Shown: positions 27,317 to 42,079 of the stretch, piece after piece
How the letters are laid out: every line of letters starts with the position of its first letter
How positions within the stretch are numbered: the first letter of the stretch is position 1
NCBI RefSeq assembly: GCF_021869535.1
Contig: NW_026262581.1
Coordinates: 25,420,001 to 25,484,000 of the forward strand
DNA: 64,000 nt
DNA from: Mytilus californianus
Taxonomy: Eukaryota
Reading direction: 5' to 3'
Notes under the pieces: generated by a model
What the model saw: the letters and a program-made list of their open reading frames with translations, nothing else
Told to the model about the DNA's origin: nothing
The model's database searches: none
Program-made: the position numbers and the translations under genes

Positions 27317-27600
27317 TAGGGATGGCAACGAGTACTTCACCCCTTTGTTGATCATTAAATGTGTTTTTTTACGGTTCCCAAATGCTGTTGTTTGAGTAAA
27401 CATTTTTCTATATATCTGGTCCTACGTAATAATGTTGAGGATTTTACGTTCATAAAACAAGACAACGGCCCACAATAAATAACATGGATGTAATTTTGTG
27501 TTTTCATTTTGTAAAAGTTTTACCGAGCGAGTACTCGAGTATCGCTCGGTAAATCCAACGAATACTCGATGAGTAAATCTTCATCGAGTTGACATCCCTA
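27317..27600. mobile_element. 284-bp hAT-type MITE ~100 bp downstream of the TIR stop codon
   Basis: TAGGGATGGCAAC / GTTGACATCCCTA termini and an exact 8-bp TSD ATATTTTG (27309-27316, 27601-27608). Confidence 0.9.
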
Positions 27601-27697
27601 ATATTTTGACAAAAAAGATTGACCTATTTTTTTTTCTTTGGTTCTAACAAATGTCTGTCCATTCTTCTTTTTTCAATAACTACTGTTTGCACAGTAC

Positions 27698-28008
27698 TTA
27701 TTCAGGCAGAAGGGCTCTTTTCAGTTTTATAATTTCAAAAATATAGTCATCATCATTAGTAAAATCAGCGTATGTTATGTGTCTTAGTTTATCTGGAATA
27801 TCACACGCCTCCAGATAAAGTGGAATGATACAGTCTTTTCTAGATTCCATTGACTCAAGTAATGCTTGATTGGTCTCAAACTGACACCAGTAGCTGTTAA
27901 CAAACTTATTGGTTATAACCAATAAGATCTTTGAACTTTTCCTGAGAGAATTTTCAATATTTTCAAATATGAATTTACCAGGTTCAAAATCTCGGTCCGC
28001 TATACAAC
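27698..28008 (-). CDS. Terminal coding exon: remainder of TIR domain (G-CIADRDFEPG...SYWCQFE...IIPLYLE...KLKRALLPE*)
   Basis: Acceptor tttttcttttAG|GT at 28010-28009. Phase 1 matches the upstream donor and rebuilds VVLR-G-CIADRDF across a 563-bp intron. TLR-like BB loop RDFxPG and WCxFE motif; TAA at 27700-27698. Confidence 0.93.
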
Positions 28009-28571
28009 CTAAAAGAAAAATAAATCTTAGCATTTTTTTTTATATTTTACTGTGGGAAAATAAACCGATTAATAATACAATCCACGTTAAAAGGAACATT
28101 TTTTCTATTCTTGTGTGTATCTTGTCAATGCTTGTCAAGATTTACGTATTATTACATGTATGAAGATTTGCATTTAGAAATGTTGTATTTGTTTTTCTCT
28201 AATTTCATATTTCATCACTGGGTCGATACCATAGCTGGTAGACTGATTGTCGCAGAAGTTTCATCGGCTCAGTAGTGATGTGTTATAACATACCCTTCAT
28301 AAAATTTTTAGAACTAAGATTCCAACTCCTCCTGGCATTATGTGATTTTTTTATTCCTTTTAGGCTCTTTTAAATATATCCTGATATATTCAAGCATTTA
28401 TACATCTTTGGCTTTAAATATAAATTTAAACGTAGACGGTGAAGGGCGTATGGACGCAACACAATAATGACGTTTTTTTTAAATATGTTCTAATTAATCC
28501 TACTGCTGAAACCAAAATTTCAATACCCCACATCTATCTATACGTTCAAAGTACCTTTAAACTATGCGTAC

Positions 28572-30672
28572 CTCTAAGGACCACATCATCCTCTGTAAAA
28601 GCAGATTCTAAATCAGCTACAAGTCGACTCAAGACCCAGTCAGCATCTTTATGACTATGAGAGACAAAGAAGTCGTAGACAAATCCTTCTGATGAATTAT
28701 TGTTTCCTGGTCCAACTGGAACTGAATTCGTTTGAGAAATTTCTTGTAGCTGTGGCTCAATGTCATCCATAAGGTTCAGGTCTGGAACTGATCTTATGTA
28801 TTCATGGAAAATTTCTGAATTTTCTATGTCATGAGTCAACAATTGAGTACAAGTTTGTACGCACTCAGTAATCAACTTTACCCTGGGGCCGTCTAATATG
28901 TGCGGTATCTTGAAAATGTCCCCAATTACTCTCATTAAAGCCTCTTTCTCGTGTTTGAAAATGAATTTATAAACATCTTGAATCTTTTCATATTTTTCTT
29001 TCCCTTTCATCATTGTAAACACGAACTCTTTCAATAGATAAACTACATTTGGTTTTAAATCCACCTCCTTCATATATCTTTTTATCATGTATCGACATGC
29101 AAGCTTTAGTGCAATATTTGATTTAGTATTTGATAAAGACACAGCTCGCTTCATCCAGTCAACGGCAGATTTTATCTCATCTAAGTCATATAAAACGGTT
29201 CCCATATGATATGCGAGAAAGTAGTTAGTTGGACCGCCTTGGTGGAGTCCAAAGTTAAGGTAATCTAAAGCATTAAGTAAATACCTTTTTTGAAATTCTT
29301 TAACGTACCTAAATCCATATTCCCGTATGTCTGGAAACTTTGCTAAAAACTGACAAATTTCGACAAGTTGGCATATTGATCTGGGTGTTCCTTTCGAAAT
29401 AAAGCATTGGTAACCATCGTTGACTGCAAGTTCGAAAAAAGTTCTTGCTTTTGATTTATTATATCCAAAATACACCTGTCCGAGGTCTTTTCTGACTAAC
29501 ATTCTGGTGCTATAACCAAACCAGTTTAAAGAACTTTCATTTATAGAACTTGATAATAAACGTTGAGCTTTGTGGAGCAAATCTTTTTTATCTTTTGGTG
29601 CACGATGCTGTTCTGATAAATTCCATAATGCTCTTCCATAACGATTCAAAATAAATGTGTCACTTCTATTCATTACTTGTGCTCTTTCAAATGCTGAAAT
29701 TGGATTATTCATAAAAACTCGAAAGAGCTGATCACTGATAAAAGAATAATTATCATCAGAAGTCAGAAAATATTTCTGTCGTCGGATAAGAATGTGTCCA
29801 ATAAGTGCATACGACCTTGCTTGGTATATAATAAAATTTTGGTTCGTTGTACCTTTATTTGTACTTATTTTCCAAAATATTTCCGTTGCTTTTAGGGTGA
29901 TGTCTTTCTTTTCTTGAAATCTATCTCTGCCATCTTCGGAACTTAAATCTTTAATGGAATCGTATTTTCTATTGAGTGCTACACCTATGTAAAAAGTCCA
30001 AATAATGTTCTCAATCGTAACGTCGAACAAGCCTCTGGCCTGCTCGAATTTCTCAAGAGCTGTTATTCTTCTAGTGAGCAATTCACTTTGGCGTTTACAT
30101 TCAATGGCCAATTGCAAATTGCTCAATGCTTGTTTATTGTGATAAACGCATCGTTGTAAGTAATCTTTCCTTCGCCCTGTTCCCTTTTTATGCTCTGATA
30201 ATAACATCCTATAGCTTTCAGAAAGTCTATTTTTAGAAATGTGTTCGATGTTTGCAGATTCTTCATTCAAAATTGCATATCCTTGTTCCATTAAGCATAT
30301 TGATTTTGTGCGAAGATCATTAGCAGTTTTGCCTTGCAAGATATTTTCTAGTCTTGACTTGTACTGATCCGCTTCTGTAGTTCTATGGAGAGTACGACTG
30401 AGTTGCTCTATATCTGCTAATGCATTTAAGTTTCTGGGATCGCGCCTTAGTATATTTTCTAGATATTCCCTTGATTCGATCTTTCCACGAGATGACTTGT
30501 TTTTCAAGATGGCGATCATGTTTTGCAAAACATTATGGACTATGATGTGTTCCTCAGTTAGACGTTTGTTCAAGCCTTCTACAGAATCTGCGATTAATTG
30601 CATATCGTTTTCAAATGCAATATTTAAGTTCAAATTTGAAAGTCCTGGCACAATGGCAACATATTCCGCCAT
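28572..30672 (-). CDS. TTC22-like: TTC22/IFIT-like TPR solenoid + start of TIR domain, large coding exon (700 codons + 1 nt) of an ~803-aa TPR-TIR protein
   Basis: Uninterrupted 726-codon ORF. First ATG is at 30672 (caaATGG), with an in-frame TAG at 30732-30730 upstream. Motifs match TTC22 as I recall it, in order: IVPGLSNLNLNIAFE~YLPGHFHLEMQLNFE, PRNLNALAD~PGNLNAWAN, CLMEQGYA~CLAEQGYA, FILNRYGR~PILNRLAK, LNWFGYSTR~LNWQAYCTR. Ends with TIR box 1 YDFFVSHSHKD and a donor AGAG|GTACGC at 28571 (phase 1). Confidence 0.9.
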
Positions 30673-32285
30673 TTGATAAGTTATAAAATGTATACTATCA
30701 AATATAAAGTCTTTTTCAGTTTGCAAAACCTAACTTTGTTTATCTGTAAAAGGAAATAATTACTATCTTAAGTTATCTTAAGTATGTTGATGAAGGATAC
30801 GATAGTCTATAAAAATATTCATTAAACATAGAAAAATATAAATTAAAATACGAAGACGTGATATGTTTGCTAATGAAACAACGTACCACCAAAGACCAAA
30901 GGTGGAGGATGTAAACAATATTAGGCCACCGACCGGCTTTCAACAATATGCAAACTCATACCGTATGGTAAGCTTTAAAAGACCTCGGATGTAAAAAAAT
31001 AAACAATTCAAAGGTGAAAAACTACGGTAATAAGCTTATATTTGTCAGCACAAATGTATATGACAAAAAAATGTTCTGGATTCCCCCTAACAACATTGTT
31101 ATGACTATTTTCATTTTGATGCAGCATATGTATATTTATAAACCTTTAGTTTAGTTTGGAATGGTCTTGGTTGCTCACATGGTTGACGTGATTGACGTCT
31201 ACAGACAAACTACAGACGATCTACTTTTATATAGAAATAAGAAGATGTGGTGTGAGTGCCAATGAGACTACTCTCCATCCAAGTCACAATGTGTAAAAAG
31301 TAAACAATTATAGGTCATTTTACAGCCTTCAACACGGAGCCTTGACTCGCACCGAACAGCAAGCTATAAAGGGCCCGAAAATGACTAGTGTAAAACAATT
31401 CAAACAGGAAAACCAACGGTCTAATCTATAAAAAAACGAGAAACGAGAAACACTTAAGAACCACATGCTAGATTATTTTAGGTGGATTATACTAAGTTGG
31501 AATCGGATCCAATACTACTACTCTACAATTCGACATTTATTACAAAAGATAAATTCATTTAAACTAAAACTCTTTTCAGAAATATGGGTATTTGATGCTA
31601 CTCCGTAAACAATGTATCTTGCCACTTTTCACGCTCTAACGGTACCCTCTCTAACTTTAAAATGAAAACTGGTACAAAACAAACCAGGAAGAGTTTTAGT
31701 AGGATCGTAGACAACTTTGACATGTTTGAACGTCTATAAAACACGACTCGGGTTTATGGTGACACCTCGAATCGTTTAAAGAGACAACTCAGACCGTCCT
31801 ACAGACAATGGCTACTGTATCATTTGATCGATTTGAAGGCATATATCAAAGACAACTAGGATCGTCAATAGACACAAATATTAAAACATATACGGTATCG
31901 TATTGTAAGCTACTGAAGGCCACGCTATAAAAAAAATAATTAAAAAGAGAAAACCATGGCAAAACAAATACAACAACCACTGAATTACAGGTTAAAATGA
32001 CTTGGAATAGGCAAACATACAAAATGTTACGAGATTAACAATGTAAATTGAGCTATTAATAAACTCTCCATTAACCTTTGAAAGTGGTATAACAGCAAAG
32101 CATAAGAACAAATTGTATCTGTTGGATACGAAGTAAAATAAACAACTAACTACTGGAACATTTTAATACACCTCGAGTATTCTGATACATAAATCAGGCA
32201 TAAATCATTATAAATAAATAGTGTTATGGTAAATAGTGATACATTATGAAATTAAAATCATGTTAATTATTGCTTGTACACTTAC

Positions 32286-32363
32286 CTTTCATCTAACATA
32301 TCTACACTGAATTGTATCAATAGTTGATAGTATACATTCTAAACAAACAGATATATAAGTACG
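32286..32363 (-). other. Putative upstream exon of the TPR-TIR gene, copy 1 (78 nt, ends ATGAAAG|gtaagt)
   Basis: Acceptor-like aatatctgtAG| at 32365-32364 and strong donor at 32285. Paralogous to 32822-32898. Confidence 0.5.
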
Positions 32364-32575
32364 CTACAGATATTATATAATGTTTTAAATGGAGGTCAGC
32401 TGTTATATTTTATTGATAGTTATTTTCTGAAAACGTCTTTTCAGAAATGAGGGCAAGCGATTTCAATGAGGAGGATTTTTTTTTATTTACTGATGTAACA
32501 AGATACATGTTAGATAAGTGGGTATATCTTATACATCCGTCAGTAACATGCTTTACTTACATAAATGTACCCAGG

Positions 32576-39866: not shown

Positions 39867-41964
39867 TAAGGGGCTGTTGATACCGCCTCTCTACTTGTCT
39901 TGATTTGCAGTAAGAGGCTGTTGATAACGCCTCTCTACTTGTCTTGATTCGCAGTAAAAGGCTGTTAAAAGCGCCTCACTACTTGTCTTGATTCGCAGTA
40001 AGAGGCTGTTAATAGCGCCTCCCTACTGATCTTGATTCGCAGTAAGAGGCTGTATATAACACCTCTCTACTTGTCTTGATTCGCAGTAAGAGGCTGTTGA
40101 TAACGCCTCTCTACTGGTCTTGATTTTCAGTAAGAGGCTGTTAAAAGCGCCTCACTACTTGTCTTGATTCGCAGTAAGAGGCTGTTAATAGTGCCTCCCT
40201 ACTGATCTTGATTCGCAGTAAGAGGCTGTATATAGCACCTCTCTACTTGTCTTGATTCGCAGTAAGAGGCTGTTAATAGCGCCTATCCACTACTCTTGAT
40301 TCAGTAAGAGGCAGTTAATAGTACCTCTCTACTTGTCTTGATTCGCAGTTGAGGCTATTAATAGCGCCACTCTGCTTGTCTTAATTCGCAATAAGAGGCT
40401 GTTAATAACGCCTCTCTACTTGTGGTGATTCGCAGTAAAAGGTTCTTAATAGCGCCTCTCTACTTGTCTTGATTCGCAGTGAAAGGCTGTTAATAACGCC
40501 TCTCTACCTGTCTTGATTCGCAGTAAAAGGCTGTTGATAACGCCTCTCTACTTGTCTTGATTCGCAGTAAGAGGCTGTTAAAAGCGCCTCACTTCTTGTC
40601 TTGATTCGCAGTAAGAAGCTGTTAATAGTGCCTCCCTACTGATCTTGATTCGCAGTAAAAGGCTGTATATAGCACCTCTCTACTTGTCTAAATTCGCAGT
40701 AAGAGGCTGTTAATAACGCCTCTCTACTTGTGTTGATTCGCAGTAAAAGGTTGTTAATAGCGCCTCTCTACCTGTCTTGATTCGCAGTGAAAGGCTGATA
40801 ATAACGCCTCTCTACCTGTCTTGATTCGCAGTAAAAGGCTGTTAATAACACCTCTCTACTTGTCTTGATTCGCAGTAAGAGGCTGTTGATAAAGCCTCTC
40901 TACTTGTCTTGATTCGCAGTAAGAGGCTGTTAATAGTGCCTCCCTACTGATCTTGATCCGCAGTAAGAGGCTGTATATAGCACCTCTCTACTTGTCTTGA
41001 TTCGCAGTGAGAGACTGTTAATAGCGCCTATCCACTAGTCTTGATTCAATAAGAGGCTGTTAATAGCACCTCTCTACTTGTCTTTATTCGCAGTTGAGGC
41101 TATTAATAGCGCCACTCTGCTTGTCTTAATTCGCAGTAAGAGGCTGTTCATAACGCCTCTCTACTTGTGTTGATTCGCAGTAAAAGGTTGTTAATAGCGC
41201 CTCTCTACTTGTCTTGATTCGCAGTGAAAGGCTGTTAATAACGCCTCTCTACCTGTCTTGATTCGCAGTAAAAGGCTGTTAATAACGCCTCTCTAATTTT
41301 CTTGATTCGCAGTAAAAGGCTGTTGATTACGCCTCTCTACTTGTCTTGATTCGCAGTAAGAGGCTGTTAAAAGCGCCTCACTACTTGTCTTGATTTGCAG
41401 TAAGAGGCTCTTAATAGTGGCTCCCTACTGATCTTGATTCGCAGTAAGAGGCTGTATATAGCACCTCTCTTCTTGTCTGAATTCGCAGTAAGAGGCTGTT
41501 TATAGCACCTCTCTACTTGTCTTAATTCGCAGTAAGAGGCTGTTAATAACGCCTCTCTACTTGTGTTGATTCGCAGTAAAAGGTTGTTAATAGCGCCTCT
41601 CTACTTGTCTTGATTCGCAGTGAGAGGCTGTTAATAACGCCTCTCTACCTGTCTTGATTCGCAGTAAGAGGCTGTTAATAACACCTCTCTACTTGTCTTG
41701 ATTCGCAGTAAGAGGCTGTTAATAGCGCCTATCCACTAGTCTTGATTCAGTAAGAGGCTGTTAATAGCACCTCTATACTTGTCTTGATTCGCAGTTGAGG
41801 CTATTAATAGCGCCACTCTGCTTGTCTTAATTCGCAGTAAGAGGCTGTTAATAACGCCTCTCTACTTGTGTTGATTCGCAGTAAAAGGTTGTTAATAGCG
41901 CCTCTCTACTTGTCTTGATTCGCAGTAAAAGGCTGTCAATAACGCCTCTCTACTTGTCTTGATT
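39867..41964 (+). repeat. Intronic satellite, 44-bp monomer, about 48 copies, with higher-order repeat structure
   Basis: Consensus taagaggctgttaatagcgcctctctacttgtcttgattcgcag. A variant block (gcctatccacta...gattca) recurs at about 40280, 41026 and 41727. Confidence 0.97.
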
Positions 41965-42079
41965 GTGAATTTTAAGAGAATCAGGACTACACAATTGTAC
42001 TTATGATGAAAAAATAAATTGCATTTTGAGGTTGTCTACAATAGGATGGTACAAAGAAAAAGTAAATACGTGTACTCAC

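Follow-up and report, generated by a model that had tools for sequence, protein, structure and literature searches.

The TIR domains of TLR1/2/6/10 and MyD88 share a box 1 motif, an RDFxPG BB loop and a WCxxE motif. We describe here a gene of Mytilus californianus that joins a TIR domain of this type to an N-terminal TPR solenoid. It lies on the minus strand of a 64,000-nucleotide stretch of DNA (the window; C1:25420001-25484000 of a 1.65-Gb assembly in 175 contigs, where C1 is NW_026262581.1). The mussel TIR has these motifs too and is 28-35% identical to those of TLR2/TLR1, but the protein lacks the LRR ectodomain, the transmembrane helix and the signal peptide of a TLR as well as the death domain of MyD88. 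A likewise soluble molluscan fusion is oyster TIR-STING (PDB 6wt6), in which the partner of a TLR-like TIR is a cytosolic domain that senses a ligand; there, however, the sensor is STING, which binds cyclic dinucleotides, rather than a TPR clamp, and the TIR is N-terminal, so that the order of the two parts is reversed. On the side of the solenoid, vertebrate TTC22 is an acidic protein of 560-570 aa with TPR Pfam families only, whereas the mussel protein (803 aa) ends in a TIR, has a solenoid that is basic rather than acidic, and contains a conserved basic insert of ~60 aa. The IFITs are interferon-induced vertebrate genes whose products lack a TIR and sequester the 5′ ends of RNA; IFIT1 and IFIT5 sense such ends on viral RNA. 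To our knowledge, bivalves have neither interferon nor IFITs, yet show antiviral responses.

For the cytosolic TIR-DC proteins of bivalves there is a catalogue of families by Gerdol et al. 2017 (Dev Comp Immunol 70:145), which PMC10279657 and PMC6321704 cite. According to PMC6321704, the ecTIR-DC families are cytosolic, occur in bivalves, brachiopods and echinoderms, and are absent as such from vertebrates, a description that the phyletic pattern of the TPR-TIR family matches. Of the architectures, the citing papers describe only those of family 6 and family 14. An earlier note on this DNA, made from its letters alone, had allowed that the architecture might already be a characterised bivalve TIR family. 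In the literature, with the Gerdol 2017 catalogue itself outside the search, we found no description of a TPR-TIR family, and no paper linking TTC22 or the cytosolic TIR-DC proteins to IFIT or TIR. Database entries for the proteins themselves already exist, labelled either as uncharacterised or as TIR-domain-containing. The cytosolic TIR proteins of bivalves are abundant and functionally blank, and the TTC22/IFIT-like half of this family offers a testable hypothesis about what one of them does.

The gene in the window is intact and transcribed, with three exons, and its product is predicted to be a soluble, cytosolic protein of two modules, a solenoid of ~625 aa and a TIR of ~140 aa. Its features, from the 5′ to the 3′ end of the transcript and with a slash at splice sites, are as follows.

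32286-32317, minus strand: 3′ end of the exon of the 5′ untranslated region (5′UTR), non-coding, with the donor ...GATGAAAG/gtaagt at 32286/32285.
30744-32285, minus strand: 5′UTR intron of 1542 nucleotides, gt..ag, with the acceptor ttttacag/ATAAAC.
28572-30743, minus strand: main exon, comprising 71 nucleotides of 5′UTR, codons 1-700 and the first base of codon 701.
28798-30672, minus strand: predicted TTC22-superfamily TPR solenoid, residues 1-625, assigned from an AF2 model, hhalign to TTC22 and VIA-align to IFIT5/IFIT1.
30067-30258, minus strand: lineage-specific basic insert, residues ~139-202, with pLDDT <50 and no TTC22 counterpart.
28687-28797, minus strand: acidic, variable linker, residues 626-662, with low pLDDT at the start of the TIR model.
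28572-28686, minus strand: first part of the TIR, beta-A and alpha-A, with box 1 (YDFFVSHS) at 28654-28677.
28009-28571, minus strand: phase-1 intron of 563 nucleotides, with donor AGAG/gtacgc and acceptor ...ttttag/GT, which splits the TIR before the BB loop.
27698-28008, minus strand: last coding exon, with the remaining TIR and the stop codon TAA at 27700-27698.
27977-27994, minus strand: BB loop RDFEPG, in the last coding exon.
27875-27889, minus strand: alpha-C motif WCQFE, in the last coding exon.

The spliced coding sequence (30672-28572 plus 28008-27698) is 2412 nucleotides long and encodes 803 aa with zero internal stops, exactly the frame and coordinates that the earlier note had drawn. 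The ATG at 30672 lies within a 726-aa minus-strand open reading frame (28546-30726), and the start codon is fixed because an in-frame TAG stands upstream of it inside the same exon. That the 28009-28571 intron, also proposed in the note, is spliced follows from independent comparisons. In an 803-aa orthologue from M. coruscus, the protein is colinear and gap-free with ours at 93.6% identity, and the junction VVLRGCIADRDFEPG is identical. At 11 paralogous loci of the same genome (35-80% identity), the tblastn match breaks at residue ~701 and resumes several hundred bases downstream with the remaining TIR. One paralogue, L009, was considered as a case of intron loss and rejected, since its match to residue 742 is read-through into an intron with a stop.

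The transcript evidence agrees. RNA-seq reads of run X21 cover only the exons, with zero depth in 28070-28525, and one read joins 28008 to 28572; the first mates fall on the plus strand, as expected of a minus-strand transcript in most stranded libraries. A 317-nucleotide RNA contig from a related organism (run X1, depth 53.7) skips the same 563 nucleotides. A second contig from run X1, of 1810 nucleotides, departs from the gene at ~30744-30745, at the ttttacag acceptor, and carries a 30-nucleotide overhang that is an exact match to 32288-32317, for which the chance expectation is zero. Because this overhang maps beside a canonical AG/gtaagt donor, we place an upstream non-coding exon there, separated from the main exon by the 1542-nucleotide 5′UTR intron. 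A TATA-like tatataata at 32360-32380 on the minus strand, ~80-90 nucleotides upstream of the 5′UTR exon donor, is a possible core promoter.

A Pfam scan of the protein found no LRR family, and the N-terminal 625 aa consist of TPR-like helices. No transmembrane segment was found (the maximum 19-residue Kyte-Doolittle mean is 1.42), and the N-terminus, which has no hydrophobic stretch, is not signal-peptide-like, in agreement with the earlier note on both counts. Because LRR, transmembrane segment and signal peptide are all missing, the "TLR13" and "TLR2" labels on the M. coruscus orthologues are misnomers, and those annotations do not denote TLRs.

The N-terminal module had been read by eye as a stretch of helical repeats, and the AF2 model of residues 1-625, built from a 15-sequence family alignment, is indeed all-helical, with ~30 helices, pLDDT 82.9 and pTM 0.76; the N-terminal strings quoted in the note were located at residues 46, 80 and 100. 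Pfam gives only sub-threshold TPR matches in this region, and a single-sequence search of the PDB with the N-terminal domain found nothing. Profile searches are more informative. A profile of residues 1-625 (A2), searched against 1.84 billion representative proteins, matches 299 proteins at E≤1e-3, of which 166 also pass E≤1e-10, among them hemichordate "TTC22-like" proteins of 552-556 aa from Ptychodera and Glandiceps, at E 9e-20 and 1e-13. The Ptychodera protein in turn finds vertebrate TTC22 at ~4e-26 over 90% of its own length and, in a search of the genome that the window comes from, matches 30265-30582 of the window (E 3.9e-7). In direct profile-to-profile alignment with hhalign, a Mytilus-only profile matches 14 vertebrate TTC22 proteins at 98.2% probability (E 3.7e-14) over 484 colinear columns, spanning query residues 21-604 and TTC22 residues 14-535, and matches the hemichordate proteins at 99.3% (E 8.8e-21). 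The motifs DPxNLNAxAxL, CLxEQGYA and NWxAYxTR are common to the mussel protein and TTC22.

On the strength of the hhalign match and the hemichordate bridge, these comparisons of sequence profiles show the solenoid to be a homologue of vertebrate TTC22 along practically its entire TPR array. The window gene is not an orthologue of vertebrate TTC22, since a tree places it in a distinct, bivalve-only clade. Elsewhere in the mussel genome, the best match to a hemichordate TTC22-like protein (E 2e-15) is at C121:80991965-80993011 (L015), in an 820-aa open frame; among the mussel members it is probably the nearest to true TTC22, and from its size it likely carries a TIR. TTC22 has no established physiological role according to PMC13693868, which links it to RPL4 and N6-methyladenosine (m6A) and reports Ttc22 knockout mice without a phenotype, for which its authors speculate about a link to host defence. 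That the nearest invertebrate relatives of TTC22 carry a TIR points to an immune ancestry for this gene.

Within this homologous framework, the predicted fold resembles IFIT. VIA-align of the solenoid model gives IFIT5/IFIT1 as the best fold match, with LGN and OGT also good matches, and the predicted model has the IFIT-type multi-subdomain TPR clamp fold. For a hemichordate relative, the nearest neighbours of the ESM Atlas model are TTC22 (template modeling score, TM, 0.64) and an IFIT5-like cluster (TM 0.64/0.71, 414 residues aligned), with generic TPR proteins at TM ≤0.52. Language-model features of both the mussel domain and the hemichordate protein are closest to TTC22 clusters (0.97-0.98), then to IFIT1/2/5 (0.95-0.96). 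The modelling thus supports a clamp-like IFIT1/IFIT5 multi-subdomain architecture rather than a regular TPR superhelix, and makes common ancestry of the solenoid with IFIT plausible.

The solenoid of the window gene is also basic, with an isoelectric point (pI) of 9.3 and a net charge of +20. Among 15 aligned mytilid paralogues, the pI is 8.2-9.3 in 14 and 7.6 in one, and the net charge is +1 to +21, whereas vertebrate TTC22 is acidic (pI ~5.2, net -19 to -26) and the hemichordate proteins are acidic to neutral. A basic insert at residues ~139-202 coincides with a gap against TTC22 in the hhalign alignment (query residues 143-222). No other part of the protein is as conserved: residues 151-200 show zero nucleotide change relative to M. 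coruscus (proportion of nonsynonymous differences, pN, 0.000) and, relative to the 80% identical paralogue, a pN of 0.017 and a ratio to the synonymous proportion (pN/pS) of 0.03. The insert might be a binding motif or, given its KKGTGRRK, resemble a nuclear localization signal.

The C-terminal module is recognized more directly. The motifs picked out in the earlier note, YDFFVSHS, RDFEPG and WCQFE, are present at residues 666-673, 706-711 and 741-745, and the last exon alone matches both Pfam TIR_2 (PF13676; E 1e-15, 58.7 bits against a cutoff of 28) and TIR (PF01582; 36.2 bits against a cutoff of 21.3). In a search of the PDB with the family profile, the TLR2 TIR comes first (9e-27), followed by TLR15, TLR6, TLR1, TLR10, TLR3 and TLR5; the same search finds Hydra TRR-2, oyster TIR-STING (1e-11), MyD88 (1e-9) and MAL, bacterial AbTIR at only 5e-4, and no match to SARM1. 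The AF2 model of the orthologue's TIR (pLDDT 83.9) reaches a TM of 0.92 to solved TIRs, and its Foldseek neighbours are TLR1, MyD88, Hydra TRR-2, MAL, TLR15 and TLR2 (E 1e-9 to 1e-7, with TLR1 and MyD88 at ~1e-9), with AbTir at 9e-6 and SARM1 at 9e-5. Across the wider family, box 1 (YDFF) and the Arg-Asp-Phe of the BB loop show little or no variation. The domain is acidic (pI 4.7).

The candidate catalytic residue of the domain, the alpha-C glutamate (Glu745), is kept in all aligned mytilid and Tegillarca copies and replaced in echinoderm and other family members, which have WCKQA or WCKKA or have lost the motif. The note had cautioned that this glutamate also occurs in non-enzymatic TLR TIRs, and rightly so, as the alignment to TLR2 shows WCKYE. 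Because both sequence and predicted structure lie nearer to TLR/MyD88, and with the alpha-C glutamate variable across the family, we assign the TIR to the scaffold type, TLR1/2/6/10-MyD88-like; NADase activity is possible but less likely.

The fusion, for which a wider survey had been proposed, is also carried by other bivalves, by a brachiopod and by echinoderms. Mytilus supplies all of the nearest proteins, with identities of 93.6% for M. coruscus, 86.9% for M. trossulus and 79% for M. edulis. Named matches to profile A2 farther away include the bivalves Tegillarca, Mizuhopecten, Argopecten and Potamilus, the brachiopod Lingula, and the echinoderms Asterias ("TTC22-like"), Amphiura and Acanthaster. 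Most long matches carry a C-terminal TIR, and the hemichordate proteins are without one. Within the M. californianus genome, at least 14 loci have uninterrupted matches of at least ~485 aa, and there are numerous stop-carrying copies and fragments, in five clusters (C1 25.21-25.45 Mb, C165, C88 57.65-57.75 Mb, C132 40.96-41.30 Mb and C110). The family is old, tandemly duplicated and subject to birth and death.

Several further loci are worth recording individually. An intact paralogue on the same strand (C1:25417248-25419122, 80% identical) lies ~0.9-2.8 kb before the window start, and C1 25.21-25.40 Mb holds further copies with 1 to 9 stops as well as fragments, forming a tandem birth-and-death cluster. 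Relatives of ~1185 aa (L014:74-3643 in Logan SRR28036160; P0108 and the similar P0169) extend TPR-TIR by a C-terminal Endonuclease_NS domain (PF01223, E 9e-31), a fusion of sensor, TIR and nuclease.

In a quick, unrooted maximum-likelihood tree of 54 N-domains, vertebrate TTC22 and the hemichordate TTC22-like proteins form one TIR-less clade (SH-aLRT 92), nested in a group (support 96) with echinoderm and brachiopod TPR-TIR proteins. The TIR-less proteins are a minority lineage within a TIR-bearing radiation, although in an unrooted tree one loss of the TIR and one gain are equally parsimonious. The gene in the window is under purifying selection. The ratio of nonsynonymous to synonymous substitution rates (dN/dS) was taken separately for residues 1-625 and for the TIR: it is 0.18 and 0.08 relative to the M. 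coruscus orthologue, 0.17 and 0.13 relative to the neighbouring intact paralogue, and 0.62 and 0.34 for a copy with nine stops.

We hypothesize that the protein is an intracellular immune sensor in which a TPR clamp binds a ligand and the TIR signals by assembly, a reading for which we judge the chances to be even. In this model, the basic clamp would bind a cytosolic ligand, and a polyanion such as RNA would be favored because of the basic charge and the IFIT-like fold. Ligand-driven clustering would then bring TIR domains together, the TIRs would seed cooperative TIR-TIR assembly with MyD88-type adaptors, and the output would feed the conserved NF-kB pathway. The ligand, the oligomerisation, the partner and the immune role are all ones that we infer. 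A protein of this kind could directly link nucleic-acid recognition to MyD88/NF-kB signaling.

Several observations weigh against the intracellular sensor. Since the usual ligands of TPR domains are proteins, the solenoid could serve as a scaffold rather than as a sensor. Whereas the TTC22 half of the TTC22/IFIT link drawn in the earlier note holds in sequence, the IFIT half is supported at the level of predicted fold and gave no signal in the sequence searches: hidden Markov model (HMM) searches of the PDB with four profiles (mytilid, vertebrate TTC22, hemichordate and merged) returned no IFIT chain at E≤10. The merged profile (A5) acted as a generic TPR detector, and a protein search with the merged alignment (E≤10) found only Mytilus members and bacterial TPRs, neither TTC22 nor IFIT. 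Foldseek alone ranks IFIT1/5 among many generic TPR proteins, and the proposed kinship rests on embeddings and on a predicted fold, that is, on a model compared to solved structures. Sensors in an arms race often show dN/dS >1, and among sliding 50-codon stretches we found none above 1, the maximum being 0.58-0.74 at residues 301-400. Finally, RNA support at the exact locus is thin: ~6% of the run yielded 46 mapped reads, a low baseline level, and only five of these reach 99% identity or more, while many could derive from alleles or paralogues.

The same two modules could instead make an adaptor or regulator, whose TIR docks on activated TLR/MyD88 TIRs while the TPR scaffold recruits or sequesters downstream factors and thereby either promotes TLR signaling as a bridge or restrains it. 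Such a role would suit a TIR that is closest to receptor and adaptor TIRs, the classical binding of peptides by TPRs, the good structural matches to LGN and OGT, and an overall purifying selection that fits a conserved partner; bivalve cytosolic TIR-DC proteins are also treated as putative adaptors in PMC10279657 and PMC6321704. We nevertheless consider it somewhat unlikely, because the best match of the modelled fold is to the ligand-clamping IFIT architecture and not to a peptide-groove TPR, because the strong basic charge is specific to the mussel clade, and because receptors, more typically than hub adaptors, undergo large tandem expansion that leaves pseudogenes. More improbable is an enzymatic effector, in which ligand binding by the TPRs would activate NAD+ cleavage by the TIR through Glu745, as in SARM1, plant TNLs and bacterial TIRs, with NAD+ depletion or a nucleotide signal as the outcome. 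The joining of a sensor repeat to a TIR does parallel the bacterial and plant systems, the TPR-TIR-Endonuclease_NS relative shows effector logic within the superfamily, and the glutamate of the alpha-C W-x-x-x-E is present in the window protein and in every aligned mytilid and Tegillarca copy. However, that glutamate is not conserved in the wider family and is shared with non-enzymatic TLR2, and both sequence and structure place the TIR far nearer to TLR1/2/MyD88 than to AbTIR, SPARTA or SARM1.

A housekeeping role outside immunity, inherited from TTC22, might, for example, involve ribosome- or RNA-associated chaperoning, with the TIR as an oligomerisation module only. Purifying selection is compatible with it, as is the link of TTC22 to RPL4 and m6A in PMC13693868, but the same paper reports a Ttc22 knockout without phenotype and a suggestion of host defence from its authors. 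A TLR-type TIR is moreover a hallmark of immune genes, as is tandem expansion that leaves many pseudogenes, and we find this role very hard to credit. The TTC22 superfamily might be an old sister group of the vertebrate IFITs, spread across the bilaterians, in which a clamp of IFIT fold for the ends of non-self RNA was first wired directly to a TIR. Mussels, brachiopods and echinoderms would then retain sensor and signaller in a single protein, and the TTC22 and IFITs of vertebrates would be descendants without a TIR. We regard this scenario as unlikely; if it is true, the IFITs would gain an invertebrate origin and the orphan gene TTC22 an immune ancestry.

The surroundings of the gene offer some further observations. 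The window is AT-rich, with a G+C content (GC) of ~0.32. A scan of the 3′ flank for bacterial promoters and terminators found nothing, and its models, being bacterial, are irrelevant to a eukaryotic gene. Just beyond the 3′ end of the gene, 27500-27613 is a high-copy repeat, with contig word depths of ~52,000 (X15) and ~27,000 (X16) against 30-150 across the gene. RNA reads map to it on both strands with many different flanks, and it is probably a fragment of a transposable element. Farther along the window, the block 40001-42000 is GC-rich (0.428 against ~0.32 elsewhere) and has an AT skew of -0.168.

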